Shown here: piece after piece, positions 1,204 to 44,324 of the stretch
Layout of the letters: every line of letters begins with the position of its first letter
Numbering within the stretch: position 1 is the first letter of the stretch
Source of the DNA: Asterias rubens
Taxonomy: Eukaryota
Assembly (NCBI RefSeq): GCF_902459465.1
Contig: NC_047078.1
Coordinates: 6,944,001 to 7,008,000, forward strand
Direction: 5' to 3'
Length of the DNA: 64,000 nucleotides
Notes under the pieces: model-generated
Told to the model about the DNA's origin: nothing
Database searches by the model: none
Seen by the model: the letters and a program-made list of their open reading frames with translations, nothing else
Position numbers and translations under genes: made by a program

Positions 1204-3128
1204 GATAATCCGATTCGTCCAAGGCGCCCCATTTATGGATCTTCAAAGTCATCTTCATCTCCACGTAGTTTCAGTGTAGAACAGCGTGGTAAGTAAATAA
1301 TACAACCTCAAATTTCATCTTTCAAAAAACTATTTTGACCTTTTAAGATATGTTAAATTATTTTATACATATTTAGGTTTAGTAAAATTTCATGTAAGGA
1401 TAGTTCAGTTAGTTTTCATCTTGCAGTGGTCATGTTAAACAAGTAGAGTCTCGAGCACTTGAAACCTGTGGTTATATTAGTTCACAAATAGCACAAGTAA
1501 AGCAAAAGGAACATTCATTATTTTCTATGGTGAGGGCCAACTGATATACTTTCAAAAAAATTAAACACAACACCAAACACAGAAAATATAAGCCTGACAG
1601 AAGAGAGCAAAACATGTTCAGAAAAACAAAGCAAATATTCTCTGTCAATAATTTATATTTGTTATTTCCCTGATTATTGCAGCCTCTCGTACCTAAAATC
1701 TATCAAAAAATAAACACTTTGTCAAGCTTCCATAATATTTATTTCCCTGTCATAAACACCCAGTTTCGAACGTCATTTTTTAGGGAATTTAATTGATGTT
1801 CGCGAAACAATTATGGAATTTGCATGACGCCCGAGAAAATTGATGGAGTAAGTTGCAAAATGATGCTCGGAACTTTATTACCTTTGCGCAATCCGCATCA
1901 GAGCAGAAATTGATTTAGTTTCCAAAAACTAGCTTGTTAACTTCCGACAAGAAATGGCTACAGGTGTAAACCAAAGAGCAACTGAAAGTCAACTGGATCA
2001 ACATCCATCAAGAGACTTGTCAGAATTACATGTTCTTTCAAATAAGATTCACTTGGTGTCATTGAAGCTGAATCTACATAGGATTAAATCTGTAGATGAA
2101 GCTCAAACGAAAACAGACACCAAAGTATCAGAGAAACAAAATCATGACAAAACGAAAGAGGCTCATTTTAAACTAGATTAACACTCAGAAGTGTGTTTAT
2201 TTTGTCATTGTTCTTGCTATCAGTTATACACAGGTGTACTCAATTAATTTGTGCGTGCCTTTTTTAATACACAGAAGTAGAACTACTGAGTGCAAGAGAA
2301 GTGCAGGAAAAAGAAAAGGTTTGCTAATAAATAGTTTGCTATTGCGTACAAAAGATGCCTTATCCACAATTAAATACAATAATGTGATAATGGAATCCGA
2401 TCCAGAGGATGTTGAACTTAAGGACGACACTTTCGAAACGAAATGTTTCACAACAAAATCCATTACAACTGTCACTGGTTGGTTTTTACTAATATCAATT
2501 TTAAGTTTAAGTTTCTGCCTTACAAATATTATCAAGCAAGCTCTGACTTATCATGTCTCCACCTCTGTGCATAAACATCTTTGATGCGGTATACCTACTA
2601 GGGGTTAAGATTGTTACCCTTAAGTTTCATGGCAATGATTATTGAAAGTAAAACTGTCTGATCAAATGCTCAAATTTAAAATGTCAAATTTATATGTTAC
2701 ACAAATATTCAACTTGTAACAAATTATCTGGTGTATTGGCATACAAATTTAACTAAATCCTGGCAAATTAATACATGATGAGCGAAATAACTTACATATA
2801 AGACTCCTACCGGGAACAAACAAGTGTTATTGCTGGGAATCAACTATGATCTACGAAATGTGTTAAGGATTATCAACTTGTGTCATGTAGTTTTGAGCTA
2901 CATTGTTGGATAGGCCTTATAGGTTGATAACATGATGGCTTACTTGTCTTTCACTAAACAATCCACCACTTTAAAAGCAGCTCCCTTTGGTTGAAACTTA
3001 TAAAATAAGTTGTTACTGGTCAACCTTTTACCAGTCTATAAGGAACACTTACGGTTGATCCCTCAGCTATGTGTATAAATAGCTTCACAAACCAAAACTT
3101 CTTACAGGTGACTGCCCTGATTACTCGG
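1204..3128 (+). CDS. Exons H (1204-1288), D (2275-2318) and E (3108-3128), first module
   Basis: H = DNPIRPRRPIYGSSKSSSSPRSFSVEQR with gtaagt donor; D = EVELLSAREVQEKEK; E = VTALITR; phases 0>1, 1>0, 0>0. Confidence 0.55.
1925..2175 (+). pseudogene. Truncated internal fragment of exon A in the H-D intron (also at ~9600, 13640, 18875, 22890, 26965, 52030, 60185)
   Basis: Homologous to QLVNFQQEMAASVEQRATDSQLD...KMKEA of exon A and fused to the pre-D intron; in-frame TAG just upstream, no good acceptor. Confidence 0.75.
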
Positions 3129-3240
3129 GTAGTTTCCCCAACCTTGTATTCCACTTGCATTTGTCCCTTCATACCATCTCTTTATTACACTTTATTCCTA
3201 ACTTTTCACTCATTTCAAAACTGTTCTGATTTTTCTTAAG

Positions 3241-4379
3241 CATTTGAGGCACATCTCAATGGAAATCGAGGAGCTCTCATCTATGGTAAGAACCGAGATG
3301 CTACCAGGTCAGTTACATTCATTGATGGAGAAATTGATCAAAGAGCAGGAACAACTTGTAAACTTCCAACAAGAAATGGCTGCAAGTGTAGAACAAAGAG
3401 CAACTGACAGTCAACTGGATCAACGGAAATCAAGAGACTTGTCAGAATTAGATGTTCTTTTGAGTAAGATCCACTTGGTGTCATTAAAGCTGAATCTACA
3501 TAGGATGAAATCTGTTGATGAAGCTCAAATGAAAACAGACACCAAAGTATCAGACAAACAACATCAAGACAAAATGAAAGAGGCTCTTGTTATACTAGAT
3601 CGGGAACTGGAGTATCTTTGTTATTTCCTGAGAAGTCATTATTTTGTCCTAGAGTGTGATATAAAATGGCATATGACACAAAGTGTATACTACTGCCAAC
3701 AAATGCTAGTTGATGATTTGCAAGGCTTGGCTCAACAAACCCTACTGGATATGGAGCCTGCCTATCAAGAGCAGTACATGAAGAATCTCAATGTGGTCAT
3801 TAACACACAGCAGCAATTGGTTCAGAACCTCACAGATCTGGAGAAGGCGTCCTCTAAGCAAGATGATCTACCTGCACGGGACACTGGCAAGCTGGAACTG
3901 ATCACAGAACAGACTGATTTGATGAAGGAGCCCTCTAAGCAAGATGAATCTACCTGCAGGGGAGATTGGCAAGCAGCAAAATGAACTGGAACTGATCACA
4001 GAACAGACTGATTTGATGAAGGAGCCCTCTAAGCAAGAGGATCTACCTGCAGGGGAGATTGGCAAGCAGCAAAATGAACTGGAACTGATCACAGAACAGG
4101 CTGATTTGTTGCAAGATTGTCTCACATGGTTGCAATGTCATGGAACATGGCTAGAGTTCACTGACCATTCCATATGGATGTTGATATGTTCTGTACTTAC
4201 TGTACATCATATGTCCCGTGGTCTTAGCTGGGAATGTGTTGAGGAGGTCTTCTCATCACATTCACATTTTCATTACAGGCCGAGGTATGGCAAACTGCAA
4301 CAACTTGGTAACATTATAGAAAGGACCATGAACAGTCAAAGAAGATTCTTGAAAGCTGAACTGTGGAATAAAATACAAA
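3241..4379 (+). pseudogene. Exon A copy 1, frameshifted (three repeats)
   Basis: ORFs 3244-3984 and 3944-4420 overlap in different frames; extra A at ~3947 (gatgaatcta vs gatgatcta). Could be an assembly indel. Confidence 0.7.
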
Positions 4380-4859
4380 GTAAGAAGAACAAACTTATTA
4401 CTGATGGTTTGTTATCTTAGTGAAGGATCCAGCATAAACATGCAATTCAACTCAATGAATTTCAAATTTGCATACTTAACTTACATAAGGGATAAAGAAT
4501 AGTTTTATTGCTTTACCCTTACACCTATGTGCGTTATGCAGTGTATAAAATACTTTCCTTGAGTCATGTGAAAAACTCCTAGACCTTGACCTTTTTTTAG
4601 AGCAAATGTCTTGCCACTACAAACCAACGAGATTGACCCTAAGACACCTGCCTTAAAGTACTATGCAAATCTCAGTGTATTAACAGATTTTAATGTATTA
4701 ACCAGATTTCAAGTCAAATCACATAACTTTGAGAAATGTTGCGGATGAAGTGCCCATCAGTGTGTTAACATCAGAAATAACAATGTAGTTTACATCGACT
4801 ACATTATGTGGGTAAACCTTGACATTGTTACTATAGACTTAATTTTTTTTTTTACACAG

Positions 4860-7392
4860 CATACACAGTATATAATAGACTGAAGGGTGACCCAACTGAT
4901 GTGAGACAGTCAAACCAAGAAGGCTCGATTGTAGTGAGACATTCACTGAAGGGTGACCCAACTGATGTGAGACACTCAAAGCAAGAAGACCAAATTGATG
5001 TGAGACATAATTATCTTAGTCAAAAGTTGATTCCACTTTAAACTTTGGTAGCTTCTAAGTTTCATTCTACCTGTTAAATATCAAATAGATACTGCTGATA
5101 ACAATCAAGGTTGAAAGAAAAAAAGATTACAGGTTAACAAATGACCGCCCTACTGTATGTACGATAACCTTGTTTCTTAAAATGAAAAGCACTTAATTTA
5201 ATGCATTTTCATTTAATGTAGCTATGAAGTCTCAAGTTTCCAGAGCATTGTTTCCCCCTGTAGTATAGATATGTTAGATTTGTACTTGTGGTTTGTTTAC
5301 TTTATTTTTGTTTTCAATATGAACAAGCTTGGAGTCACACCATTGATTGATAAAACATTCACATTCTTTTTCTCCTTGGTACAGGAATCTGACCTGGAAG
5401 GGCTCAAGATCAGTACGGAAAAAACTTTGTTGTCAGATAAAGATGAAGGTATACCAACAAACATCTTATATGAAATTAATGATTTCATTTCCCTCACTCT
5501 CTTCATCTTCCCTCACTCCACCTTGGCACACCATGCCTCACTCTCTTCATCTTCCCTCACTCCACCTTGGCACACCATGCCTCACTCTCTTCATCTCCCC
5601 TACTCCACCTTGGCACACCATGCTTCACTCTCTTAATCTTCCCTCACTCCACCTTGGCACACTCGCATGCTTCATTCTCTTAATCTCCCTGACTCCACCT
5701 TGGCTCACCATGCTTCACTCTCTTCATCTCCCTCACTCCACCTTGGCACACCATGCTTCACTATCTTCATCTCCCTCACTCCACCTTGGCACACCATGCT
5801 TCACTCTCTTCATCTCTCTCACTCCACCTTGGCACACCATGCTTCACTCTCTTCATCTCCCTCACTCCACCTTGGCACACCATGCTTCACTATCTTTATC
5901 TCCCTCACTCCACCTTGGTTGACCATGCTTCACTATCTTCATCTCCCTCACTCCACCTTGGCACACCATGCCTCACTATCTTCATCTCCCTCACTCCACC
6001 TTGGCTCACCATGCTTCACTCTCTTTATCTACTTCACTCCACCTTGGCACGCCTCACTATCTTCATCTACCTCACTCCACCTTGGCACACCATGCTTCAC
6101 TATCTTCATCTCCCTCACTCCACCTTGGCACACCATGCTTCACTCTCTGTATCTCCCTCACTCCACCTTGGCACACCATGCTTCATTATCTTTATCTCCC
6201 TTACTCCACCTTGGCACACCATGCCTCACTATCTTCATCTCCCTCACTCCACCTTGGCACACCATGCCTCACTATCTTCATCTCCCTCACTCCACCTTGT
6301 CTCACCATGCCTCACTCTCTTCATCTCCCCTACTCCACCTTGGCACACCATGCTTCACTCTCTTAATCTTCCCTCACTCCACCTTGGCTCACCATGCTTC
6401 ACTCTCTTCATCTCCCTCACTCCACCTTGGCCCACCATGCTTCACTATCTTCACCTCCCTCACTCCACCTTGGCTCACCATGCTTCACTCTCTTCATCTC
6501 CCTTACTCTACCTTGGCACACCATGCCTCACTATCTTCATCTCCCTCACTCCACCTTGGCTCACCATGCCTCACTCTCTTCATCTCCCCTACTCCACCTT
6601 GGCACACCATGCTTCACTCTCTTAATCTTCCCTCACTCCACCTTGGCTCACCATGCTTCACTCTCTTCATCTCCCTCACTCCACCTTGGCACACCATGCT
6701 TCACTCTCTTTATCTCCCTCACCCCCACCTTGGCACACCATGCCTCACTATCTTCATCTCCCTCACTCCACCTTGGCACACCATGCTCCACTCTCTTTAT
6801 CTCCCTCACTCCACCTTGGCACACTATGCTTCACTCTCTTCATCTTCCCTCACTCCACCTTGGCACACCATGCCTCACTATCTTCATCTTCCCTCACTCC
6901 ACCTTGGCACACCATGCCTCACTCTCTTCATCTTCCCTCACTCAACCTTGAAAAAACATGCTTCACTCTCTTCATCGACCCTTACTCCACCTTGGCACAC
7001 CATGCTTCACTCTCTTCATCTTCCCTCACTCCACCTTGGCACACCATGCCTCACTCTCTTCATCTTCCCTCACTTCACCTTGGCACACCATGCTTCACTC
7101 TTCGTCTTCCCTCACTCCACCTTGGCTCACCATGCTTCACTCGCTTCATCTTCCCTCACTCCACCTTGGCACACCATGCTTCACTCTCTTCATCTTTCTT
7201 TACTCAACTTTAAGTTAAAATTTGTGTTTGAAGAACTGTACGGTTGATATTGTTTTGGAAAGCTGGTCTTTCGAAGTTTCCAAATGTGCTTGGTTTAGGA
7301 TATTAACAGAAACTATGAAAGGCCTGATTTATGTTTTGTTTTTTTTGTTTTTTTATAAAGCTCGAAAGAAACGGCAAGAATACCAAACTGAG
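4860..7392 (+). CDS. Exons B (4860-4999), C (5385-5448) and B' (7361-7392), first module
   Basis: B ...LKGDPTD...EDQID|gtgaga; C = ESDLEGLKISTEKTLLSDKDE|gt; B' = ARKKRQEYQTE|gtgaga; phases 1>0, 0>1, 1>0. Confidence 0.55.
5491..7210. repeat. Intronic minisatellite, 43-44-bp unit ctcactccaccttggcacaccatgcttcactctcttcatct(t)cc
   Basis: About 1.7 kb of tandem units, C/T-rich on the + strand; source of the spurious H/S/L/P-rich ORFs in all three + frames. Confidence 0.95.
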
Positions 7393-8147
7393 GTGAGACA
7401 CTTTCTCTGATTCAATAATTACTTTAGTCAAAAGCGGATGCCACTTTATATTGGTACAGGGAATTTTGGTTCAGAGACTAATGCGTAGCGTAATGGAGGT
7501 AAAAGTGGCCTTAAATTTACTTGAACTCAATGAAATTTAATGACACATAGGTTCTTATATTTCTCGGCCAATGTTGACCTTTTATTTGTAACCATTAGTG
7601 ATATATGTTACCTGCAGTTGATCTGAAGAAGTTTGTGCAGACATCGAGGATTACTTGTACAAAAATATACATTATAATCAGCAAATAACTTGCACTTCAT
7701 AATGTAGTTGAATAGAGTAATGCCATCGAGATTTAGTTAATCCTGGAAATTGTTCGCATAATACCTGAAAAGAACAAGTGTTTGTTTGGTATCAGCTATG
7801 ATCTACAAAATGCTGTCAGGATTTCATAATTGTCATGGTAGTTCAGGAAACAGTGAAGTGATGTACTTTTTTCCCTGATGACTAAAGACGTGATGTATTT
7901 TACATGGCTAAGTTAATAAGCTACGTTGTTGGATAGGTCTTTAACTTGACTAGAGAACATCTCAGATTGCCATTGAAAATATCCCTTCCAGAATTACATT
8001 CAGCTCTTCGCTGCACTCGGTTAAAGGTAAACTCTCCCAAAATGTTCCTCCGATGAGTTGTAAACAAATACAGAAGTCTGGAAGCATCCATCAGTCTTGA
8101 GTAATTGTGCACATTATCTAAAATGTCTTGTTTGGGTATAAAGTAGA

Positions 8148-8432
8148 AGCTCCCTCTCAAAGAACGTAGATTTTGAGAAAGAAGTAATTTTCCACAAATT
8201 TGATACATAGAGAAATAAGAGACCTCAGAATTTGATTTTGAGGTCCCGAAATCAAGCATCTGAAAGCACACAACTTAATGTGACAGTGGTGTTTTTTCTT
8301 CCATTATTATCTTGCAACTTTGACGAATTTAGTTCAAATTTTCACAGGTTTGGTATTTTGTGCATATGTTGAAATACACCAAGTGAGAAGACTAGTCTTT
8401 GACAGTTACGAAAGAGTGTCCAGTGTCTTTAA
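8148..8432. mobile_element. Same MITE family, partial copy (duplicated at ~58735-59020)
   Basis: Same core and right TIR. Confidence 0.8.
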
Positions 8433-8872
8433 TAATGCTAAAGTTTTTTCGTAAAACATAAACTGGGTGTTTATTTCAGGCACCATTACACGTGTTGTGC
8501 ACTTTAAAACACTTTGAATGCCCATCACCAAATTTTCTGATAAAAATGTTAACAAATCCTGTGCTTTTTTATTTAAAGTAGTACTCCATAGTCAAAAGTT
8601 ATTATTCAAAATAATATTTATTATTCATTGAAGGGAAATGAAATCTTACACTACTGGTTTCTTTATTTAGATTTGGTTTGATTTAAAACACAAATGGATT
8701 ATTACCCTTTTTTGCTAACATTAAGTTGTTATACTTTAAGTATTGTTAAAACTTTTGTATGTTTATTCAGGTTGCATTTTATTATTCGTTATCTCAGTTT
8801 TTTAGAACAAAATAAAGACCACAGACGTAGAAAACCTTTTACTGTATTCTCCCCTCGATTTGTTTTACCAAG

Positions 8873-9987
8873 GATAATCCGATTCGTCCAAGGCGCCCCA
8901 TTTATGGATCTTCAAAGTCATCTTCATCTCCACGTAGTTTCAGTGTAGAACAGCGTGGTAAGTAAATAATACAACCTCAAATGTCATCTTTCAAAAAGCT
9001 ATTTTGACCTTTTAAGATATGTTAAATTATTTTATACATATTTAGGTTTAGTAAAATTTCATGTAAGGATAGTTCAGTTAGTTTTCATCTTGCAGTGGTC
9101 ATGTTAAACAAGTAGAGTCTCGAGCACTTGAAACCTGTGGTTATATTAGTTCACAAATAGCACAAGTAAAGCAAAAGGAACATTCATTATTTTCTATGGT
9201 GAGGCCCAACTGATATACTTTTAAAAATTTAACAAAACACCAAACACAGAAAATATAAGCCTGACAGAAGAGAGCAAAACATGTTCAGAAAAACAAAGCA
9301 AATATTCTCTGCCAATAATTTATATTTGTTATTTCCCTGATTATTGCAGCCTCTCGTACCTAAAATCTATCAAAAAATAAACACTTTGTCAAGCTTCCAT
9401 AATATTTATTTCCCTGTCATAAACACCCAGTTTCGAACGTCATTTTTTAGGGAATTTAATTGATGTTCGCGAAACAATTATGGAATTTGCATGACACCCG
9501 AGAAAATTGATGGAGTAAGTTGCAAAATGATGCTCGGAACTTTATTACCTTTGCGCAATCCACATCAGAGCAGAAATTGATTTAGGTTAAAAAAAACTAG
9601 CTCGTAAACTTTCGACAAGAAATGGCTACAAGTGTAAACCAAAGAGCAACTGAAAGTCAACTGGATCAACAGACATCAAGAGACTTGTCAGAATTACATG
9701 TTCTTTCGAGTAAGATTCACTTGGTGTCATTAAAGCTGAATCTACATAGGATTAAATCTGTAGATGAAGCTCAAGTGAAAACAGACACCAAAGTATCAGA
9801 GAAACATCATCATGACAAAATGAAAGGGGCTCATTTTAAACTAGAGTTAACACTCAGAAGTGTGTTTATTTTGTCATTGTTCTTGCTATCACTTATACAC
9901 AGGTGTACTCAAATAATTTGTGCGTCCTTTTTTTAATACACAGAAGTAGAACCACTGAGTGCAAGAGAAGTGCAGGAAAAAGAAAAG
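8873..9987 (+). CDS. Exons H (8873-8957) and D (9944-9987)
   Basis: Near-identical to the 1204/2275 copies; splice sites intact. Confidence 0.55.
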
Positions 9988-10865
9988 GTTTGCTAATAAA
10001 TAGTTTGCCATTGCGTACAAAAAATGCCTAGTCCACAATTAAATACAATAATGTGATAATGGAATCCGATCCAGAGGATGTTGAACTTAAGGACGACACT
10101 TTCAAAAGGAAATGTTGCACAACAAAATCCATTACAACTGTCACTGGTTGGTTTTTACTTATCACTTTTAAGTTTAAGTTTCTGCCTTACAAACATTATC
10201 AAGCAAGATCTGACTTATCATGTCCCCACCTCTGTGCATAAACCTCTTTGATGCGGTATACCTACTAGGGGTTAAGATTGTTACCCTTCAGTTTCATGGC
10301 AATGATCTTTGAAAGTAAAACTGTCTGATCAAATGCACAAATTTAAAATGTCAAATTTATATGTTACTCAAATATTCAACTTGTAACAAATTATCTTGTG
10401 TATTTGCATACAAATTTAACTAAATCCTGGCAAATTAATACATGATTAGCGAAATAACTTGAAAGGGAAACCGACGACAGATTCACATCATAAGATGGAC
10501 TTTGTGCAGCCTGGAAAATCTACACACAAGGTTTGAACTATCACCTGATAAATATATATAAAAAGTCTATTTAAATTATATGAGCAGTCTGTTTTCCACT
10601 GTATAGCATGTAGTGGGTGTATTCGCGCACCGTAAGGATACATGTAGTGCAGTTTTGAATCTGTTGGAATGCACATCACCAAAGATCCTGATATAAACTA
10701 TTTAACATATTTTACTTTTTGCTTTAAAATATTACTCCACAGTCAACAATAATTATTTTTCATAACACTTATTTTCACTAAGGTCAACTGATTTCATTTT
10801 TATTTGGTTTGGTTTGAAAGCAAAAAACACTATCACAGTTTGTTGCTAATATTATGTGTTAAATA

Positions 10866-11204
10866 AAAACGTACTCGGTAACAAGCAACGGATAGCTGTT
10901 GATAGTATAAAACATTGTGAGAAACGGCTCCCTCTGAAGTGACATAGTTTTCGAGAAAAAAAAGTAATATTCCACGAATTTGATTTTTAGACCTCAGATT
11001 AAGAATTTGAGGTCTCGAAATCAACCATCTAAACGCACACAACTTCGTGTGACAAGGCTGATTTTTTCTTTCATTATTATCTCGCAACTTCGACGATCAA
11101 TTGAGCTCAAATGTTCACAGGTTTGTTATTTTATGCATATGTTGAGATACACCAAGGGAGAAGACTGGTCTTTGACAATTACCAATAGTGTCCACTGTGT
11201 TTAA
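10866..11204. mobile_element. Same MITE family, one copy per tandem unit (also 14875-16433 interrupted, 20103-20443, 24121-24461)
   Basis: Core gatagtataaaacattgtgagaaacggctccctctgaag...ttgagatacaccaag...aattaccaatagtgtcc; source of ORFs MRDNNERK/MIFRPQIK. Confidence 0.88.
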
Positions 11205-11237
11205 ACCAACATTTTGTTTTATGTTTTGTTTTACCAG

Positions 11238-16127: not shown

Positions 16128-16466
16128 TTGATAGTATAAAACATTGTGAGAAACGGCTCCCTCTGAAGTGACATAGTTTTCGAGAAAAAAAAGTAATATT
16201 CCACGAATTTGATTTTTAGACCTCAGATTAAGAATTTGAGGTCTCGAAATCAACCATCTAAACGCACACAACTTCGTGTGACAAGGCTGATTTTTTCTTT
16301 CATTATTATCTCGCAACTTCGACGATCAATTGAGCTCAAATGTTCACAGGTTTGTTATTTTATGCATATGTTGAGATACACCAAGGGAGAAGACTGGTCT
16401 TTGACAATTACCAATAGTGTCCACTGTGTTTAAACCAACATTTTGTTTTATGTTTTGTTTTACCAG

Positions 16467-30400: not shown

Positions 30401-31776
30401 CAAGGTTGAAAGAAAAAAAGATTACAGGTTAACAAATGACCGCCCTACTGTATGTACGATAACCTTGTTTCTTAAAATGAAAAGCACTTAATTTAATGCG
30501 TTTTCATTTAATGTACCTATGAAGTCTCAAGTTTCCAGAACTTTTTTCCCCCTGTAGTATATAAATGTTAGATTTGTACTTGTGGTTTGTTTACTTTTTT
30601 TTTTTTTTCAAGATGAACAAGCTTGGAATCACACCATTGATTAATAAAACATTCACATTCTTTTTCTCCTTGGTACAGGAATCTGACCTGGAAGGGCTCA
30701 AGATCAGTATGAAAAAAACTTTGTTGTCGGATAAAGATAAAAGTATACCAACATACATCTTATATGAAATTAATGATTTCATTTCCCTCACTCTCTTCAT
30801 CTCCCTCACTCCACATTGGCACACCATGCCTCACTATCTTCATCTCCCTCACTCCACCTTGGCACACCATGCTTCACTATCTTCATCTTCCCTCACTCCA
30901 CCTTGGCACACCATGCTTCACTATCTTCATCTCCCTCACTCCACCTTGGCTTACCATGCCTCACTCTCTTCATCCTCCCTCACTCCACCTTGGCTCACCA
31001 TGCCTCACTATCTTCATCTCCCTCACTCCACCTTGGCACACCATGCTTCACTATCTTCATCTTCCCTCACTCCACCTTGGCACACCATGCTTCACTATCT
31101 TCATCTCCCTCACTCCACCTTGGCTTACCATGCCTCACTCTCTTCATCCTCCCTCACTCCACCTTGGAACACCATGCTTCACTCTCTTCATCCTCCCTCA
31201 CTCCACCTTGGCACACCATGCTTCACTCTCTTCATCTTCCCTCACTCCACCTTGGCACACCTTGCTTCACTCTCTTCATCTCCCTCACTCCACCTTGGCA
31301 CACCTTGCTTCACTCTCTTCATCTTCCCTCACTCCACCTTGGCACACCATGCTTCACTCTCTTCATCTTCCCTCACTCCACCTTGGCACACCTTGCTTCA
31401 CTCTCTTCATCTCCCTCACTCCACCTTGGCTCACCATGCTTCACTCTCTTCATCTTCTCTCATTCTCTTCTTCTACCCTCATTCTTTCCTGGCTCACTAA
31501 GACTCACTCTCTTCATCTTCCCGCACTCCACATTGACACCATGCCTCACCCTCTTCATCTTGCCTCACTCCACCTTGGCTCACCATGCTTCACTCTCTTC
31601 ATCTTCCCTCACTACACATTGGCTCACCATGCCACACTCTCTTCATCTTTCCTCAGGATACCTCATTGTTCTTAATATCAGTTATACACAGGTGGATTTT
31701 ATTAATTTGTTTGTGTCTTTTTTGTACACAATCCATCTATTTCGAAGAACCAAAGAGAGCAAGAATGACAAAGAAG
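24495..31776 (+). CDS. Predicted N-terminal modular exons of the ZU5-Death gene (I-J-H-D-E-A-B-C-D')
   Basis: I 24495-24579, J 24752-24768, H 26089-26203, D 27309-27352, E 28138-28158, A 28271-29630, B 30222-30313, C 30679-30742, D' 31748-31776. All are open and phase-compatible. From the ATG at 24501 through the Death exons the model totals 3507 nt (1168 aa plus stop). Micro-exons J, E and D' are the weakest links. Confidence 0.55.
28271..29630 (+). CDS. Exon A copy 2: coiled-coil-rich exon with five 31-aa repeats
   Basis: Matches ORF 28274-29671; cttaag acceptor and CAA A|gtaaga donor; Q/E/L/K-rich helical sequence; no recognisable family. Confidence 0.75.
28901..29365 (+). repeat. Coding VNTR, 93-bp unit (EPSKQDDLPAGEVGKQ[Q/L]NELELITEQTDLMK) x5
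   Basis: Directly visible tandem repeats; approximate ends. Confidence 0.95.
30785..31660. repeat. Same 43-44-bp minisatellite, shorter array
   Basis: Follows exon C as in the other copies; ~0.9 kb. Confidence 0.95.
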
Positions 31777-33668: not shown

Positions 33669-33855
33669 CATTCCTCCGATGAGATGTAAACAAATACAGA
33701 AGTCTCGAAGCATGCACCAGTCTTGAGTATTAGCTGTTTCTTGTGTCCGAATGTTTTTCCAGTTTGATAAGAAAATGTCTGCCAATCAGTTTCAAGAACA
33801 AAAAGTATACATGAGAGTGAATGTACAACCAAAAATATTTTTTTTTTGTGATCAG

Positions 33856-33961
33856 GATGCCACTGACGAGCCCATTGATGAAGACAGCAATGTAGATGCT
33901 GCAGGATTTACTTCAATCACACAGACTACTCAAGCAGTTACACAGATGGCACCAAGAAATG
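33856..33961 (+). CDS. Exon F, acidic linker (DATDEPIDEDSNVDAAGFTSITQTTQAVTQMAPRN)
   Basis: T-rich tract plus atcag acceptor; G|gtgagc donor; 106 bp; phase 1 matches the ZU5 exon. Confidence 0.75.
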
Positions 33962-36900
33962 GTGAGCAAACAGTCAAAGGCTGGTCCATACAAATTCAGT
34001 TTTGAACTAAATAATGCCTGGCTATATTACCATGAGGAGAAGCACTGTAGTAGAGGATGAGTATACTTTGCTTTTTTTGTCATAATAATCATCTAGAAAC
34101 TTACACCTTGTGTGTTATTTTTTAAAAGGAAAACAAAACTCTAGTTACTTCAATCGCGGTATTTCTTAACTCACTTGCCTTTTGAATATTGGCTTTAAAA
34201 ACAAATACCATTATTGTGTGCTTAACTTGTGCAACCTAAACCTATATGATCAAGTGAGGTTTGCAGAGACACCATGCAAATAAAAAGAAGCTCCCCCTTC
34301 CCTCTATGACATGTGGTATTTATAAGAATAACTGATTGTTAACAACCCGTTTTTCTCCGAACCACTGCAGCTTATAGAGAAAGTGTATTTACATGATGTC
34401 TCTGCAAACCACCACACTTGATTGTTTTTCAACTATGTACAGTTTCAAATCCATTGAAACTAATTTAACTCTTTTCTCTGATAAAAAAAATGTTGTGAAT
34501 GTGATAACTTTTTTATTTTCCAGAATCGCCTTTTCATCTTGAAGATGTACTGAATGAGTTTAACAAACAGACATTGGACATCAGTGCTAATGAGAAGACT
34601 GACATCTTGCTGCAGTTACCATACATGGCTGTTGGCTTCTTCAATGAAAAAGGTGGCATTTTGGCTCTGGTGAAATTTGATGTGCACCTTTACATTCCGC
34701 ATGGTGCAATAGCTGAAGGCCCTCCCCAGCTTGTGTATATCTATGTCAACCCTGATATAGTTGTTGATGATAAAGTCTATGGTGAAGAGAAACAATTGTC
34801 ACCAGAGGTTCAGTGTGGTCCTCCAGGTCTTACATTTGAAGACAGTGTGGTGTTGTCTTTTCCTCATCATGCAGACTCATCTGGCTGGGAGTTTACTGCT
34901 AAGATGTGTCCAGCTTCTTCAGAATCCTGGCAAGCCCTTGATAGCAGCACTGATGGTCAGCTGGTGTCTGCTAAGGGAGGCAGAGCAATTTTTCTGGTCA
35001 ATCATTTCACTGGGTTTGCATTGTTTGGCACATCATCGGGTGTTAATGGAATTTGTGTGAGAGTTGGAGCCTTTGGAAATATCTTTGATTTGAGGAGTTA
35101 TGCTTTTCGAGTTTATATGTGGAAGGATGACAAGGTGTCTGAGGAGGTAATACGATTTTCCAAATTTGTTTATGAAAGAACGTTAAGGAATTTTTCATAC
35201 TGAAAATCTGATTGGCTCTGCAAAATCGAGTCACAAGGGGGACAATTGACTTCTTGGGTTTTATACATAGCTGAAAAGAGCAAACAAGCTCCAGTTTGAC
35301 ATATATTACACATTTGTATGACGTTTGGTTCAAAAGTAATGACCTTTTGAAAAAACAATTATGTCACAATCTGAAAATATGACCCATACTGGGGAAACAG
35401 CCTGTTTCATAAAAACATCAACTATTGATGTCTAGGGGATGAACAAAAAGTACACGTTTTATTCACCCTTATTGATCAAAAACAAATGTGTTTTTTCTTC
35501 AGAAAATGTCAAAATATAGACCCTAAAGAAGCATAAAACCACATAAAATAAATTCAAGATTAATTTATTTTCACCCTCCCATCATTCAACAGCCCTGTAC
35601 TGGAAAGCGGGTTGTGGGACAAGCAACTCATTAATGTAGAACCTGTCACATATAGGTACATGGGGGTATGCAAGTAATTCTTTTATAAATCAGAAAACTT
35701 GTATGTTTGAGTTGTATTTCAAGTGTTTATGTTGAAATCAGTGATTACAGATCTATTGTAGGAATCATGCTTGTTTTATTTGAAAGGATGCACAATGCAC
35801 ATGTAAAAGTCGTTATAGGAAATAAAATGAAGAATTTTAAACAGCTACCTGAGCGGAATGTTTTTAACAGAAATGCTTTTTTAACTTGTTTATAATGCAG
35901 TTGTTCACCATTTTAATGTAATTTTGATATGTGAACACTTCTGAAATTTTCATAATTATCGAATAAAAAATCAGGCCCCAACCTAAAGGTTTTCAAAAAC
36001 TAAAAACACTTCTGCCATTGACGGCGCGTGTCAAAGGACAATGCTCGCTGACGTTGTTTGCGGGAGTTTGCTACAGAGCAAATTTATCAGAAAAGCGCTG
36101 GATAAGGGTATTCAAAATGATTGTTTTTTTTTACACAATTAAAATCTATTTATAATCGTATGACTCGATTTCCTTATTCATTGAAAACATTTTAAATGAA
36201 ATTCAGCAAAGTTCACGACTTGACATTTTCGTTCAACCAGGTCTTTAAATTAAAACTCACTTGTTACAAAGTTGGACAAGATGTCATAGTTGGTTGTTGT
36301 TTTTTGTGAATTTTTAATTTAAAATACCATGCTGTTCTGAAAAGTAAAAACTCGTTCTTGTTATTCTGCATTTTTGTTTGTCTCGCAGAGAGTTGAGGAA
36401 CTTGAGAAGAAACAAAAATCAGAAATGTTGGATACCTATAAGAATTTGATTTTTGTCAAAGATAGAGGACACATGCATGTGGAGATGACAGAAACCGTTG
36501 AGGGATGGGAAGTGAGACCACAAACAACCCAGGTAAAGAAATCTAATACAAAGACATTATCGTAATTACTACATCAGGTGAAACAAGTTTGACATTTGAG
36601 TTTATTTACCTGTAACCTTTAGGAGACCAAAGCAGTTGTCAAGGGAGACTTGAAAATACAAGTACAGAATGAGTATTTGGCCATGGAAGCTGTGTATGTG
36701 TCTAGGGGCAAAGCCCTTTGGTAGGGTGAGGCAGCCGATCCCTCTTTAAGATTTTTTGTTTTTAGCTTGGCTTAAAAAAGCTCTCCTTGCTATAGAATAT
36801 TTATATCGCAATTAAACTTAGGCTTGGTTCAGTTCCTGGAAGCTTTTGACTTTCTGCATATGCTATAGAATATTTATATCGTATTAAATTAAACTTAGAC

Positions 36901-39900
36901 TTGGTTCAGTTCCTGGAGGCTTTTGACTTTCTGCATATTTGTTGACTAGGGAGGACTCTCAATCTTCATTAATATCATTAATAGGCAAGTTTTGATAGAA
37001 TGACACTTTAAAAGAATTCTTGAATACTCTTGAAAAAACCTATACTCCTAATTTTTAATGTTAGGCTTTTGTAACAAAATGCCCTTAGTTATTTTTTACT
37101 TCTCCCTTTCTTTTATAGTCCCTATTCAATTTTTCTTCTTTTTACTTTCTATTTTTCCGTTTTTTGTTGTTTACTTTCCCCCTTTTTTATTATTTAAAAA
37201 AACAATTAAATGATGGGGGAAGCCGCCTTGTTCCTCCCTGCAGCGCAAAATGCTACTAATTGTCTTACTTCGGTGTAATAAAACAAGTCAAACAATCCAG
37301 ACAACAGAAAACAATAATTTGTATCTTTTATGAGAGCCGGTGATATCATAGTAAAAGGAGAGTTTTTCCTCTAGCAGTAAAGTTCCCACAAATTGATTTT
37401 TTTGTTCAGGAGATCCGAGAAGAGGATGTATGGGCGTTCTCTCAGAATTCAGTCTCATTCAATGTGAGAATTAGGGGAGGCAACAAAGATGAAATTCCTT
37501 ACATGGCTGTAAATTGCTACCAGCAACAAGAAGGAGATGATGGTCAAGGAAGGAAGCTTCTACTCGATGTTGGGCCAAAGCCAGTGGGTATTTTCAGACA
37601 GCTATTGAAACATGATAAGATATAACCAGGAAGATACAAATATAACTGAAGGGATGTTTTGATCAGTAAGCTATGGTTGTCTTCAGGAGGATGCTGGACT
37701 CTTTTGCTGGATGCTATTTAAGTAATAATATAATAATAGCAGTTTTTACCAAACAAGGTACTGAAGGCACTGAGTATATACAAATAGTCAGGTTATTGCA
37801 GTGATGAATTCTGAAACCCAAGTACTGCCTTGGGGATGAACTTCAGTTTAGTGAGCACACACTGCCTACCCAAACCCAGTGGTGGGTTTTTGAGTTTTCA
37901 GTTCCAACTCCAGCCAACATGCTTCACCGAGCTCAGCCCAGTATTTCTCGTTTCTGTTCCCACATTTTTACACCATAGAGCAATGCCCAGCTACAATTTC
38001 CAAGGCTTAAAGCAGCATTCAACAACAGAGTCAAGCACCCTCCTGAAGACGATCAGAGCATACTGATCCAAAGGTTGAGTTGTCAACCACCGGTTCTTTT
38101 CAGAACTAACACTAACCAAAAATAGATAATCACATGGTGTTACCGCAAACCTCACCTGGTTGTATTAAGAATGGTCATTTTTCACTCTTGTGTATTTTTT
38201 AATTAATGAGTTTATTTTATAGGCAACCAAGTAAAATAGATACTTGTACAAGTAAATGCTCTACTTACTGTAATACAGAAAATTATATGAATACAAATAA
38301 TAATATGATAAATGCAAATTTTGTGTGTCTGAACGTTATTAAAACTTCAACGAAAAAGTTAAGGTCGTGTTTAGTAAAATCGGTCGGCGAGGGTGGCTTT
38401 ATAACGCTAAACCGCTTGACTTTGCTCCGTAATACACAGTCATCATTGGTGCACCGCAATGATTGATTGCATTTGTTTTTACACTACAGGCTCAAATGAG
38501 GAATAACAACTTTACCCAAACCTGTGATGCTCAGCAGAGGCGTATGTGCGATGCTGCTCATTCAATTGTAAGAGCTACAGGCAACTAAATGTATCAGTTA
38601 TAGCAATAGTATATTAAAACAACTAATGAATTAAAATTCCAGAAAATATGAAACTATGAGTCGGGGAAAACAATTGATGTTTATTTGTGGTTTCCACACA
38701 TGCTTTCGCTTGAATGCAGTATTGGCACAGCAATAACTACTCAAGGCTAGGAATTGCAGGGACTACAATGGAAACATTTCATTCTGAACCAATTGTCTGA
38801 TAAATAATAGGCTTATATAAAACAAGACTTTGATGGAAATTTAAGTGTGTAATATGTGACAAATTTAGGCACCACATGGAGAAACATTTTGTAAACTTGT
38901 TTTGAATGGCCCTTACTGACCACTTAATTCTATGAACATCCTTGGATAAATGAAACCCGTTTAAAACGCAAAAAAACAACGCACTATTTTGTTTAATGAA
39001 ATAACCACCAAACGGTGACCACTGGCCAAAATCTTTGCTATGGCAAATAAAGCATTGAAACAAGTAAGGCTGCAAATTAGCTAAATAATTTGTGAGACAA
39101 AATTACAGCTACTGACCACTACATGACCATTGACAAATAACTGTTTTAGTAAGATGTTAAAATTTCATCAGGGATTAAAAATACTATTTGTTTGTTGCGC
39201 CTTCTCATTCTGAAATGTAACAGTCCAGATTTCACAGTGTAATTAGTTTTTTTCCGTAGTATGTTAAGATGTGTTGAAACAATTAAATCGAATTTTTTTT
39301 GCACTTGACAGCCTGCTTCATGCCATACTGATGGGAGTGGAGATAATACTATGCCTAGTAAACCAATGACTGAAGTCACTGTGAGTATAGCAGTTTTATC
39401 ATCAGGTTGATATTATTTTAACAGAAAACAAGTAAACATACAAGCATATAGTTTTCATCTGCAACAAGGCGTTTTGTATTCATAGGACAGCCCAAACCTC
39501 TTGCTGTTGATAGTATAAAACATTGTGAGAAATGGCTCCCTCTGGAGTAATGTAGCTTTTGAGAAAGAGTTAATTTTCCACTCAAATATTTGAATTTGAT
39601 TTTGAGATCTCAGAATTAGATTTTGATCTGAAAGCACAGAACTTCGTGTGACAATGGTGTTTTTCCCGTTATTATCTCGCAACTTCAACTACCAATTGAG
39701 TTCAAATTTTCACAGGTTTGTTATTTTGTGCATATTATGTTGAGACACACCAAGTAAGAAGACGGGTCTTTGACAATTACCAAAGGTTTCCATCAGTGTC
39801 TTTTAAGTTTAATAGGCTAAGTTTTGATTTAGTGCCATGTGTTATCAATATTTGTTTATGTATGATCTATACTGCATCAATCCTTCAACGTCAACTGATA

Positions 39901-41331
39901 TGAGTTTATGTAAGAACCCTACTACCTAAATCATCCACAAATCAACCAATATAAGTTTCATATGGAGTTTCCTTAATGTGACTGGGCAATAGAGGGCGCC
40001 ATCATTTTCGCGCAATATGGCTGTTGTGCAAAAGTGTACGTGTACATTGAATAACGCGATCAGCCAACCTCGTTCCCAGGGGTGATCGATCTCGCCGCGC
40101 CATTTTTTCCCAGTATGCCTTGCTCGATCATAACCCCTGGAATTGTCAAATTTAAATGTGCCATAAATGAGCGTATATATTCCATCTTTTCTACGTGCGC
40201 ATGCATGTCTTTCGTCTTAAAGAATGTTTTTGTTTTGTTTTTGTTTTTAAAAAACGTGTTCGTGTCAAAAAAAACGCGGGCGTGGTGAACATGCAAGATG
40301 ACAAGCGCGTCATTCTGCACGCGCGTTGAATATGAAATACACGTTTGAGGGTTTTTTTATTGAACGCTCACGCGATGCTGTTTGTTCAACTTACAAAATG
40401 GCCGCACAAACACACGCTGTGAGATGCCAGTTTTGTCAACTTAGAAAATGGCCGCCTTGGCGCATGCCGGGGCGCCAATATAGGCAAGTGCGCTCTCTAG
40501 TTCTTACATATAACTCTATGGCTACAACAATATAAGGTTTGGGTAAATTTGTGCGTATTGACCATAGAAATAGAACGTGTGTTATTCAGTGAAGTGCGCA
40601 TTTTAGGCGACGCGGCATTTACACGTAAACCTTTAGACGATCCCTATCATTTGGCCACACATTTCAACTCGGTATGTATGTAGTATCCCTACTGCCTGAC
40701 TTCTCTAAAATAAACCACAATACAATACTGACCCAATCCTTCAAAATCAAGAATTTAAGATACAGCCTTTTCTCAAGTCTGTTGCTATTCATCCCTCTAC
40801 CTCAAAATAAAAAAATGAAACATGTATCACATTTATATTGTTTGTCATTCAAATATTGTTTGTCTGCTGTTAAGAATGCCATTTCAAGTGTAACCAGAAG
40901 AAGACCTTGCCAGGTGTTGTATGGTGGCTTATCAGACCAGAAAGTGAATGATCTTTGTGAGTTTCTTGACAATCAAGCTGCTGGTTACCATGGTTTGCCT
41001 CTTCTGGATTATCTCTCTGGTAATGGATACATACCTCCCAAGACACCTAAAAAGGAAGTTCTATCAACGTACTTTAGCCTGTGTACAAAGCACAACATTC
41101 CTGACCAGGACGCTGTTCAATATCTGAAACTGGTCTTCCATGAACTCAATTGCACAAGAGCAGCAGAGATAATAGAACCAGGTATGTTCTTATGCTTAAA
41201 ACAGCTTACTAGGCATGTTAGTTGTTTGCAAAAATGCTCCAATAGAAATAGAATTAGAAACACTTTTTCAAATCTATAAAATTTTCAGAGATGCCAAGTT
41301 CAGAGGCCAGCTATGCGTGAGATTTTTCAAC

Positions 41332-41362
<31 letters not shown>

Positions 41363-44324
41363 AAAAAAAAGTTTTTACAGAATCACCGAATCACCGCCCG
41401 GGAAAAAAAAAAAAAATTATATAAGAAATATCTTCTTTTTTTCATATAACTATTTGTGGAGAAAAATGTTTTTGAAAAACCTCTTTTGTATACTTCGAAC
41501 TCACATGAGGTACACAGGAGATGTTGCTGGTTAATGTGGAGGTACGATTGTGTCAGATTATTTTCCCAAAAAAGATAAATTTCTGGCTTAATAATGTTCA
41601 AAATCCTCCGCTCACCCCACTTCTCTGCTCGTAGAGTACATCCAACGAATTTGTTAAGAAATCGTGACAAAGTTGTGCGCAATTCACATTTTGCGCTTTA
41701 CCGAATTGCTGAATTGTCGTCTGAATCCTCTGATAGAGCAAAAAGCGTGCGCAATCTTCAAATTTGCACTCTGTTTTCATGCCAGCTCAAGTTAATTCTG
41801 AAAAACTGCGTGCAATCAGAAGATTGTGCATTATTTTAATTTTTTTCCCGGTCTGCCCCCAATGCTGTGAAAATTATTGCAGTGCGTGAGAGCGTGAGAC
41901 AGGACCCTTATTCCAAGGTGGCGTTATATGCTACCACACAACGTAGTACCCGGGCTAGTGCCTATCTTGTTTTATGAGATCTTTGCTCTAGCCAACCTTT
42001 CTATTTCAATGTGTGTTCCAAAGCACTACAATAGCTACCATAAAAGTTGACCGTTTTTACAAATTACTCAAATAGAAGCATATCACTGACATTCTTACAA
42101 TTACACTTTTAACACAAATCGTTAATATAAGTGAGCTCAAGGATGTCTACCTATTAACATTGGTCATGTAAAAGTTATTTTTTTCATCTTAATCATGGGG
42201 AAACATTGTATATTTTTCAAAATGTTGTATCTTTGAGTCTTCTTTCATGCCAAATCACACTGCCGAAAAAAAGGTTCAGGTGTCTTAATTTTATTATGCG
42301 AGGTAACGGACACCAGTTTTTCCCGGACAAAAAGACATTCTAAATTCAAAATTAGCATTGGGGTGGGGAGTCTGGAGATAACCTTTTTTGTTTTCAAAGG
42401 AAAACCCCCATAACCAAGGCATAACATGTTTGTTAAACATAGTATTGGGCAATAACACTAGAAAAAAGGGAACTCTTGAAAACTTAAAACTTTAGTGCTG
42501 GAGCTCCCCTGGACAAAGTGGACAACAAGTCTCAATTAATTAAAGTTTAGAAAACAAATGGTATTTAATAAAAAAGTGAACTTCCATATTGTCTTTCTTA
42601 AACTCATGATTCAATCTCCGTTTAATATCAGGTGGTGAAAGAGCAGATGCTGAATCAATCCCGCAGTTTCTTGACAATGAGTCACTGGTAATGTATGATT
42701 CAATTACTCAGTATTCAAACAAACATTTACAGCTAAAACGTCCAGATTTAGAAAGTTGGATGTTGGCAATGGTCTGGAGGATTGACTAAATTTCAAATGT
42801 CTCATATTGTAAGACTATGTTTAATTGAATTTTTAAGGGTGAAAACATTTTTAAAAGTTCAGCAAAAAACTTCTTTGTATAAGAAATATACAATACCTAT
42901 GGTTATTTGACATTGGTTTGTTTTCCAAGTTTAGCAAAAAAAGGTTAATGCCGTGATGTGTCGACCCTAGTAAAGTCTTTCTTAAAGGCCAAAGTGAAGA
43001 TGAATAAATCAAGAAATGGGAGGGGGGAGGGTAGGCAAGAAGTGCACAAAAAAAGTAAGGGGTAGACACATAAAACTGATAAGGGGTGGGGCCGGTTTGA
43101 CCACAAGAGGTGGATTGAGGCAGATTAAACAAGTGGATATCTGTGAAAAATATAGCAGGCAAAGACACATTGGAGTTGTCTTTCTTGTACAGCTTATTGA
43201 AGTCGACCATGATTAAAAGAAAAATCAATTATTTTTGAAATTGCCGTGGGTAAAAGGAATTATAACTAAAAATTAAAAAAATCTGAGTTAAATCAGTTGA
43301 TGCCGGGTTTTGTGTTTTGCAAATTAATTCCTTTGCAAACATGTTTTTCATGTATCTTTAATGACTGATAAGAAAGGTCATTCTTAACATGCATTCTTAA
43401 TGTGCAAAGCTTCGATTCACCTAAACAACGAGGACAACTCGTCATTTCTAATGTTGTTTTGTTAATGCCTCCACGGTTGTATTCATTGTATTTGAGCACA
43501 ATGGAGACAAATACGAGGGGATTGAGATTCCATTCCATGATTTTGTGTATGCCCGTCAGTTTTCTCTCGTTGAAAACTACCTATGGTTGCATTCCTTTTG
43601 AGAAACTAATACCCATTATCAGAACTCAATATCAACTTCACATAAAGGCACTTTGGACCTCAGTATAAATAGTATATTGAACAGTCAGTCAACATGTTTT
43701 AAAATAACCAATTAATGGAATGAGAGGGTCATCAAACAAAGAAGTTTAACATGTGTTAATGTTTATGGAATTTTGCTTGTATGTATTTACTTTCAGACGA
43801 AAGGAGATGCTGAGATATGTCTTAGAGATTTAGCTAAAAAGCTAGGTCCAGAGTGGGAAGACTTAGCAACCTATTTAGGCATCATAAATAGTGAACTTAC
43901 TGCAGTGAGAAGCGAAGGTTCTGGGAGAGTCAACAGCCAGATATTCAGCATGCTAGTCAGATGGATGCAGGGATTTGGTCCATTTGGACAGGCGGCTTTC
44001 AACACTTTGTCATCAAACTTGGGGAGGATAGAAAGGAATGATCTGGTTGAGTTGTTAAAGGGAAAGGTAACAAGCATATTGTTCTTTAACAAACAAAACA
44101 ACAGACAATTGTTAATGAAGGTAAACAAAGGTTCCAGCTCTTGAGTATTCGGTCAGTGTCTGTGTCACTGCTAATGCATGTGGAGTAATGCAAACAAAAA
44201 ATGCACTTACCAATTCTTTTAGAAAAAAAAGATCAAATAAAAGATGTGTTGTTACTAATTTAAGGCTGTAAAAACATTACTCTCATTGTTCCTTTTCAGT
44301 TTTATTGTTTTATTTCAGACTTGA
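33856..44324 (+). CDS. Spliced gene, 3' half: ZU5 - UPA-like - death-fold-like - Death domain protein (UNC5/PIDD/UNC5CL-like architecture)
   Basis: Exons 33856-33961 (phase 0>1), 34524-35146 (1>0), 36389-36532 (0>0), 37410-37583 (0>0), 40875-41181 (0>1), 42632-42687 (1>0), 43797-44066 (0>0), terminal 44319-44324 (ACT TGA; alternative acceptor gives 44300-44365). All have AG/GT boundaries, no stops and compatible phases. Confidence 0.85.
34524..35146 (+). CDS. ZU5 domain exon plus start of UPA-like domain
   Basis: Motifs FFNEKGGILAL, LYIPHGAI, LSPEVQCGPPGLTFEDSVVLSFPH and VNHFTGF are typical ZU5 signatures; ttccag acceptor, GAG|gtaata donor. Confidence 0.92.
36389..36532 (+). CDS. UPA-like region exon 1 (RVEELEKKQKSEML...WEVRPQTTQ)
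   Basis: tctcgcag acceptor, CAG|gtaaag donor, 48 codons, phase 0>0; follows ZU5 as UPA does in UNC5/ankyrin/PIDD. Confidence 0.8.
36790..36938. repeat. Tandem duplication of a ~75-bp intronic segment
   Basis: gctatagaatatttatatcg...cttttgactttctgcatat occurs twice in a row. Confidence 0.9.
37410..37583 (+). CDS. UPA-like region exon 2 (EIREEDVWAFSQNSVSFNVRIR...LLDVGPKP)
   Basis: tttgttcag acceptor, 58 open codons, CCA|gtgggt donor giving phase 0. Confidence 0.72.
39505..39805. mobile_element. Same MITE family, partial copy
   Basis: Same core; right end ...gtgtcttttaa. Confidence 0.8.
39985..40640. other. CpG-rich island inside the UPA2 / death-fold intron (promoter-like or transposon-derived)
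   Basis: Visibly CpG-dense against the AT-rich background; two aaaatggccgc (YY1-like) motifs at ~40376 and ~40425; small hairpin at 40076-40140. Confidence 0.4.
40875..41181 (+). CDS. Helical, death-fold-like domain exon (DED/CARD-like, unclassified)
   Basis: Open frame NAISSVTRRR...DLCEFLD...LLDYLSGNGYIP...YLKLVFHELNCTRAAEIIEP; strong G|gtatgt donor. The acceptor could instead be at 40914 (same phase). The fold assignment is inference. Confidence 0.65.
42632..42687 (+). CDS. Short linker exon (GGERADAESIPQFLDNESL)
   Basis: atatcag acceptor, CTG|gtaatg donor; 56 bp bridges phase 1 to phase 0 as required. Confidence 0.7.
43797..44066 (+). CDS. Death domain exon
   Basis: LRDLAKKLGPEWEDLATYLGI...QIFSMLVRW...L..IERNDLVELL matches the Death domain pattern; tttcag acceptor, AAG|gtaaca donor. 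Confidence 0.92.

Follow-up and report, generated by a model that had tools for sequence, protein, structure and literature searches.

Tandem duplication and a head-plus-tail gene

The window analyzed here comprises 64,000 nucleotides (nt) of the starfish Asterias rubens (chromosome record LR699108.1:6944001-7008000; all coordinates below are window positions), with a G+C content of 33-40% and no runs of N; its placement follows from the locus of an annotated A. rubens protein, which is 100% identical to 44186-64000 over 19,815 bases. Between 24.5 and 44.1 kb it probably contains one intact, transcribed gene for a soluble protein of ~1224-1250 amino acids (aa) with a head-plus-tail layout. The low-complexity start of the protein, to which a hypervariable exon contributes, is followed by an all-helical head that contains a 31-aa unit present as a variable number of tandem repeats (VNTR), by basic and acidic linkers, a ZU5 and a probable UPA domain, a cryptic death domain (DD) and a canonical death domain. 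Self-BLAST of the window revealed a tandem cluster around the gene: a decayed head copy lies upstream, followed by four 5′ cassettes, either alternative or repeatable, and a second gene, LOC117301407, lies downstream.

The exon model was built from homolog alignments (tblastn), splice signals and RNA joints. It lies entirely on the + strand and yields an open frame of 1224 aa from the ATG at 24501 to the stop at 44144, with 16 exons and GT..AG at every intron; adding exon Y (78 nt) gives 17 exons and 1250 aa. An original prediction, made from the letters of the window alone, had proposed an intact model of 1168 aa from the same ATG. The start codon, the intact frame and the good splice sites of the short exons were recovered in the rebuilt chain; the length was not, some boundaries differ, and not all of the exon letters of that prediction could be mapped one-to-one onto the rebuilt exons.

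The coding region opens with exon I of the last cassette (24495..24579, coding from 24501), which shares 93% identity with residues 1-27 of A. amurensis XP_071806545 and has an RNA joint. Exon J (65 nt; 25355..25419), with RNA joints to both I and H, matches residues 26-49 of the A. amurensis paralog P0004, and the first 49 residues of an A. amurensis head protein map to 24501-24581 and 25351-25422, in agreement with the start proposed at 24501. The hypervariable, Ser/Pro-rich exon H (115 nt; 26089..26203) comes next, followed by exon E (44 nt; 27309..27352), probably the exon lettered D in the original prediction, of which there are eight copies with AG/GT sites. The all-helical head and a subsequent Cys/Trp/His-rich segment are encoded by the large open exon A (28271..29630; 75% identity to P0004), whose donor, CAAA/GTAAGA at 29630, is used in four RNA runs. 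The basic exon B (30222..30313) is RNA-supported in its 3′ part and donor, whereas its 5′ boundary is predicted, the acceptor AG at 30220-21 preserving the frame in the splice-signal model. Exon C (64 nt; 30679..30742), micro-exon D′ (29 nt; 31748..31776) and exon F, an acidic linker (33856..33961; 86% identity to P0004), complete the connection to the tail. D′ is single-copy in the window plus 20 kb downstream and is unique to this gene. The linker exons 30222-30313 and 31748-31776 encode dense basic clusters, PRKRRARR and KKPKRARMTKK, which, judging from their residues, resemble nuclear-localization or dibasic processing signals.

The tail begins with the ZU5 exon (34524..35146; Pfam ZU5, 3.4e-18), which carries the ZU5 domain and the first UPA strands and at whose end, 35146, the RNA contigs stop. 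The exons beyond are defined by homology and splice sites: UPA exon 1 (36389..36532; 88% in tblastn to P0004 and the A. amurensis ortholog P0157, AG/GT), UPA exon 2 (37410..37583; 95% identity to P0157), the optional in-frame exon Y (38490..38567; AG and GTAAGA sites), which is also present in P0157 (85% identity to residues 1096-1121), linker exon X (39312..39380) and linker exon L (42632..42687), both found by tblastn. Between X and L lies the exon of the cryptic death domain, DF (40875..41181), and the chain closes with the death-domain exon that contains the stop codon (43797..44144; Pfam Death, 8.4e-11).

RNA evidence for the exon chain

Assembled contigs from four A. rubens RNA runs (X1, X2, X5 and X6) were aligned to 29360-35200 and 24350-30340, and each of the joints retained has GT..AG intron ends. 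In the 5′ part, 24579>25355 (I>J) and 25419>26089 (J>H) were each found in two runs (X2, X6), and 27352>28271 (E>A) in three (X2, X5, X6); RNA rows at the H donor were dropped owing to a simple repeat, and hence the joint from H onward is not listed. The direct E>A joint leaves no room in the main form for an additional micro-exon between 27352 and 28271. Toward the tail, 30313>30679 (B>C) occurs in all four runs, 30742>31748 (C>D′) in one (X1), 31776>33856 (D′>F) in three (X1, X2, X6) and 33961>34524 (F>ZU5) in three. A single 387-nt contig from X1 spans C, D′ and F and reaches 189 nt into the ZU5 exon; because it carries the 29-nt micro-exon between C and F, D′ is real, as had been predicted partly from its phase. 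Of the four junctions that lead from head to tail in the original prediction (A>B, B>C, C>D′ and D′>F), the last three were thus recovered in RNA contigs, and A>B only in the forms of paralogous copies.

Several observations weigh against one gene at 24.5-44.1 kb. The A>B joints at 29630 carry letters only of the copies at 4860 or ~63730/63784, not of the acceptor at 30222, and the RNA contigs include 21 letters unique to the copy at 4860. The E>A and B>C joints are indistinguishable from those of a near-identical downstream copy and, the sequences being identical between copies, are not assignable to either one. The X1 contig that joins C, D′, F and ZU5 has an extra A in the A-run at the C/D′ joint, by which exon F would acquire a stop; an allelic difference, an error at the homopolymer in either the reference or the contig, or an isoform with a broken frame could each account for it. 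The evidence consists of assembled contigs, not reads, and carries no isoform proportions. Contiguous RNA cover of 31428-31776 (X1, X2), from the 3′ end of a minisatellite into D′, hints at a short isoform starting near D′. Finally, the protein searches yielded no A. rubens entry for this gene.

Some of these data, together with others, would fit two genes in place of one, that is, a head protein ending by read-through at 29630 (stop 29671) and a short ZU5-UPA-DD-DD protein starting near D′/F, the fused contigs being minor read-through. Consistent with such a division, the end of the read-through open reading frame (ORF) is common to P0002, RNA depth extends beyond the 29630 donor, and an X2 contig continues unbroken from 31584 to 31774 into D′, which contains an in-frame ATG. 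A headless short paralog of 541 aa (P0003) exists in A. amurensis, and at a paralogous A. rubens locus ~385 kb off, RefSeq annotates separately the head-only gene LOC117301753, with two head units, and a ZU5 gene 8.7 kb later. We nevertheless consider two genes unlikely, given that C, D′, F and ZU5 are found in one contig and C is seen joined to B only, that every exon phase fits, and that head and tail form a single gene model in the distant starfish Patiria and Acanthaster.

The extra A also bears on the idea that the gene is a decaying duplicate, which would be transcribed into frame-broken products that are degraded, with no functional protein resulting. Besides the stop that this letter would create in exon F, such decay would agree with the lack of an A. 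rubens model in the protein searches and with the condition of the exon A copies in the window, two of four being frame-broken (one is described below; the other, a diverged copy at 53267-54326, is interrupted near 53662 by a stop and a shift). The reference frame, however, stays open through 3.7 kb of sequence in 16 exons, none of whose splice sites is damaged, the H variants differ by multiples of 3 only, and the tail is 80% identical over 617 residues to the intact A. amurensis ortholog P0157, making decay of the whole gene very unlikely. A single intact gene therefore remains our preferred reading, and the prediction that the repeat-bearing head is joined in one open frame to the ZU5-UPA-death-fold-Death tail is supported by RNA joints and by fused gene models of other starfish.

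The variable head

Within exon A, a coding 93-bp (31-aa) VNTR of 5.0 units occupies 28897..29359 (+ strand; TRF, 95% matches, no indels). The number of units in three head copies is 2.3, 5.0 and 7.0 (TRF), and one RNA contig lacks 186 nt of the VNTR, which equals 2 units. Together with four frame-keeping variants of exon H, these differences confirm the variability that had been ascribed to the head. Pfam detected nothing significant on the large head ORF, and an ESM Atlas search with the pre-VNTR head gave chance-level rows only (best 0.59, recognition 1220). AlphaFold, run on exon A with 8 paralogs, predicts only helices, with a pLDDT of 44.6, too poor for a fold search; of the coiled-coil VNTR proposed originally, the repeat and, at this low confidence, the helices are retained, whereas the coiled coil is unproven with a model of such quality. 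Profile comparison (hhalign) of the head with the Patiria and Acanthaster heads resulted in a probability of 81% and an E of 1.2e-5 over 219 columns. The N-terminus, which had not been recognized from the letters of the window, thus has a weak profile link to these heads and occurs in annotated, uncharacterized Asterias proteins.

The conserved tail

Pfam matches ZU5 (PF00791) at 34574-35203 with 66.2 bits (cutoff 21) and Death (PF00531) at 43773-44144 with 42.3 bits (cutoff 22.6), both where they had been predicted to lie. The spliced model has no reference entry, and orthologs served as proxies for Pfam scans and folding. UPA (PF17217) scores above the cutoff on the A. amurensis paralogs P0004 (31.4 bits) and P0003 (36.5 bits); the two UPA exons of the window, scanned alone, had no Pfam match, and there is no UPA call on the ortholog P0157, though the window exons are 88-95% identical to it. 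When a family profile was compared with solved structures, UNC5B (3g5b) was best for ZU5-UPA (1.4e-41). The nearest solved structures to the canonical DD are those of the CRADD DD (1e-8), the ankyrin-3 DD and the PIDD DD. The DF exon, 102 aa between UPA and DD, has no sequence match and is kept in Patiria and Acanthaster. For this region, AF2 predicts six helices (pLDDT 74); Foldseek alone gave E>1 with the model, and a second look with VIA separated death folds from the rest, the model being superposable as a six-helix bundle on known folds of the DD/DED/PYD/CARD group. With a six-helix death fold in DF, the tail reads ZU5-UPA-DD-DD. Pfam found no LRR, NACHT or CARD/PYD output domain in the exons or in full-length paralogs and no Ig or thrombospondin domain on the head, and there is no transmembrane (TM) segment (best 19-aa hydropathy 1.3), in line with the earlier statement that TM, LRR and NACHT are absent.

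At the end of ZU5, an HFT motif (35003..35011, + strand) stands where HF/S self-cleavage of the PIDD type takes place. Across 28 aligned homologs, the F of the motif is nearly invariant and H-F-T/S/C is found in all but a few; T, S or C follows F in nearly all echinoderm, hemichordate and amphioxus homologs, and UNC5D has unrelated residues. PIDD cuts itself at HF/S right after ZU5, NLRP1 and CARD8 cut at SF/S, and Ser, Thr and Cys are all usable as the nucleophile in such self-cleavage (PMC3210808). UNC5CL retains ZU5 self-cleavage, whereas canonical UNC5 does not (PMC10084454).

The 5′ cassettes and the upstream chain

Four tandem units of ~4 kb occupy 10.5-27.8 kb (10460..27830, + strand) and are 97-99.8% identical to each other in self-BLAST. 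Each unit includes exon I with its ATG, exon J, a variable exon H and exon E, together with a spare exon resembling J and a partial, decayed exon A copy. The summed lengths of I (85 nt, from the acceptor), J (65 nt), H (70, 70, 88 or 115 nt) and E (44 nt) are a multiple of 3 in all four units, the cassette exon copies all have AG/GT sites, and no stop interrupts the translation of the four units in series; the cassettes are thus phase-closed, as had been claimed. Exon H measures 115 nt in the last cassette and 70, 85 or 88 nt elsewhere, all lengths being 1 mod 3. The H variant of units 1/2, that of unit 4 and that found at 1.2, 8.9 and 59.5 kb are all present in RNA contigs, each joined upstream, the differing variants being joined to J; more than one cassette is therefore in use. 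Such joints would suit a variable-first-exon cluster of the protocadherin/UGT1A type, in which every cassette would start from a promoter of its own and splice singly to the common downstream exons; the acceptor of exon I, however, is used as well, as indicated by a loose contig end at 24496. In one X6 contig, exon I is joined at this acceptor (24495/24496) to 29 letters further upstream that occur neither in the window nor at the LOC117301407 or LOC117301753 locus, which implies a further 5′ exon outside the window or at a paralogous locus.

Two candidates for additional coding exons were rejected. The spare J-like exons J′ (10466-10530, 14474-14538, 19705-19769 and 23723-23787), located ~780 bp upstream of exon I, have AG/GT sites, and no RNA joints to them were seen; splicing from E to J′ was discarded because the phase-0 entry after E does not give the J frame, which needs phase 1. 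The partial exon A copy at 26967-27224 has no RNA joints, LOC117301407 splices H>E, and H>E>A keeps the frame.

The original prediction had extended the phase chain without a break from 1204 to 44324. Its starting point at 1204 is indeed an H exon (1204-1288), which is followed on the + strand by further head exon copies, namely E (2275-2318), exon A copy 1 (3241-4379), B (4860-4999), C (5385-5448), H (8873-8957) and E (9944-9987). A 1-nt insertion in the first VNTR unit of exon A copy 1 breaks the frame and gives stops, so that the chain from 1204 is not one intact ORF; its 24501-44144 part is open. One giant modular coding gene, composed of the upstream head copy and four cassettes in series, would be compatible with the phase-closed, open cassette exons, the used exon I acceptor, the transcription and splicing of the upstream copies, and the presence of two chained head units in some A. 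amurensis and A. rubens models (P0156, P0001, P0159). It is nonetheless highly improbable: besides the frameshift in exon A copy 1, no joint from E to the next exon I is among the listed RNA joints, which leaves the claimed serial joining of cassettes unsupported, and the 29 letters preceding exon I lie elsewhere than in the window. We thus retain the shorter gene starting at 24501, with the cassettes as its 5′ array.

Other features of the cluster

Self-comparison further delineates a partial, transcribed head-exon copy at 0.6-10.5 kb (637..10460, + strand), the head copy of the gene itself at 28.3-31.7 kb, beyond which unique sequence with the ZU5 to Death exons extends to 44.1 kb, a diverged head copy at 51.7-57.8 kb, and another from 58.9 kb onward that is 98-99% identical to the copy at 26.3-30.2 kb. 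Behind each head copy, always in the intron after exon C, there is a CT-rich 44-bp minisatellite with strong strand skew (5494-7195, 30788-31655 and 55662-57776, with 39, 15 and 48 units, respectively; TRF). The array at 30788..31655 is intronic, since the X1 joint 30742>31748 splices past it.

The D′>F intron carries an inverted copy (32545-33406) of part of a head block (52434-53295) at 95% identity. Repeats very highly represented in RNA contigs, with depths up to ~1.5 million, were observed at 31995-32072 (- strand), 31895-32479, 33455-33844 and 24350-24549, with apparent related copies at ~39.4-39.6 and ~44.35-44.56 kb. One of them is called by ARAGORN as tRNA-Val(AAC) with no Rfam match and is for this reason probably a tRNA-derived short interspersed element. 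The Rfam scan of the whole window detected zero families, and Pfam found nothing on intergenic ORFs at 46.8-51.8 kb or on ORFs within the cassettes.

Starfish relatives and neighboring genes

When the ZU5 exon was searched against 1.84 billion representatives, starfish proteins came first. Models with the same layout include A. amurensis XP_071806545, XP_071806112 and XP_071806315, Patiria miniata XP_038065471 and Acanthaster planci XP_022086032, and the gene belongs to a starfish family whose members already appear in databases as "uncharacterized." Two of the A. amurensis proteins and those of P. miniata and A. planci are 1060-1100 aa long, with ~500 aa of helical N-terminus before ZU5-UPA-Death. 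These asteroid proteins have in common a helical head, ZU5 with HF-S/T/C, UPA, a cryptic death fold and a DD; identity to the window gene is 63-80% for A. amurensis and ~34% for P. miniata and A. planci. In contrast to the 5 VNTR units of the A. rubens gene, they contain 1-2, and an H exon and a D′ micro-exon of its own, together with the four-cassette 5′ array in front of it, further set that gene apart. Literature searches on ZU5 and death-domain proteins of echinoderms, sea stars and Asterias rubens turned up no paper on this family. Lineage-specific expansions of death-fold proteins with variable flanks have been described in marine invertebrates, including starfish (PMC8195603).

The downstream neighbor, RefSeq LOC117301407 (685 aa), has its coding sequence annotated from 54186, inside the broken head copy and downstream of its break. 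Its exons include B, C, H (59459-59543) and E (60531-60574) but not the intact exon A at 61493-63038, and from E it continues to F and ZU5 exons of its own past the end of the window. Its tail is devoid of the D′, X, DF and L exons and hence of the cryptic death domain. RefSeq calls no gene in 44186-54185; an ankyrin-repeat gene (1389 aa) begins ~9 kb past LOC117301407. Since the queried A. rubens protein set appears to lack the window's own gene or to contain it in pieces, the exon model presented here is a useful annotation correction.

A possible self-cleaving switch

By analogy, the protein may work like PIDD1/UNC5CL and the FIIND of NLRP1/CARD8. Release of the tail upon loss of the N-terminal part, as in NLRP1/CARD8, serves as the model for the mechanism proposed here. 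ZU5 would cut itself at HF/T, with the resulting head-ZU5 and UPA-DD-DD parts remaining associated. Once the variable head was lost, degraded or rearranged, the UPA-DD-DD piece would be set free; by oligomerizing and binding partners with death domains, for instance an adaptor like CRADD or a kinase of the IRAK/RIP type, it would trigger cell death or inflammation. Sensing, or being targeted, would fall to the fast-changing head, and a receptor, immune, self-recognition or cell-death role can be envisaged for the protein. We regard the self-cleavage mechanism, taken alone, as possible, if somewhat short of an even expectation. Counting against it, the nucleophile of the motif is Thr here, as opposed to the Ser proven in PIDD, NLRP1 and CARD8, and self-cleavage, partners and immune role are predictions only.

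The protein could instead be a structural or neuronal scaffold akin to ankyrin or UNC5, its ZU5 binding a cytoskeletal partner and not acting in a self-cleaving switch. Its nearest solved sequence relatives, UNC5B, ZO-1 and the ankyrins, speak for such a function. We judge it improbable in view of the lack of an ectodomain, TM segment or ANK repeats, the retention of HF-T/S/C, which is lost in UNC5D, the two death folds, and a tandem duplication and head variability that are atypical of scaffolds.

A more far-reaching version of the self-cleaving switch would turn the locus into a diversity generator: four cassettes with their own H exons and a variable VNTR would diversify the head, through cassette choice or variable serial inclusion, and the protein would represent an echinoderm counterpart of the NLRP1/CARD8 tripwire with death-domain output, its tail being released when a pathogen attacks the head. 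This extended scenario we hold to be doubtful. If the proposed self-cleavage mechanism holds, self-cleaving ZU5-UPA sensing with death-fold release would not be restricted to vertebrate NLRP1/CARD8 and PIDD1; echinoderms would have it too, coupled to another kind of head that changes rapidly and to an output through two death domains. The locus also offers a concrete case in which to study how tandem duplication, a coding VNTR and phase-closed cassettes could vary one end of a signaling protein and keep the other fixed.

Comparison with known systems

UNC5A-D provide the best sequence match for the starfish ZU5-UPA (3g5b, 1.4e-41); however, their Ig/TSP ectodomain and TM segment are both absent from the starfish protein, and they lack the HF-S/T motif. 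UNC5CL (ZUD) is similar to the starfish protein in having a short ZU5-UPA-DD tail without a netrin-binding ectodomain, and its ZU5 self-cuts (PMC10084454). It differs in its N-terminal membrane anchor and single DD, whereas the starfish protein has no TM segment, a long helical head and two death folds. In NLRP1/CARD8, the FIIND is a ZU5-UPA unit with a cut at SF/S, after which the released UPA-death-fold piece assembles with itself (PMC3210808; PMC7794386). The output domain there is a CARD and not a DD as in the starfish protein, NLRP1 additionally contains NACHT-LRR, and the family profile search gave no sequence-level match to NLRP1/CARD8. PIDD1 shares ZU5-UPA-DD and the HF/S cut after ZU5 (PMC3210808), and both starfish death folds have the PIDD DD among their nearest solved relatives; PIDD1, however, has an LRR head and two ZU5 domains, where the starfish protein has a helical head with a VNTR, a single ZU5 and HFT instead of HFS. 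Going by predicted domain content, the starfish protein is neither an UNC5 receptor, nor an NLR sensor, nor a PIDD1 ortholog, but its ZU5 and C-terminal DD make it a likely member of the ZU5-UPA-DD supramodule class.

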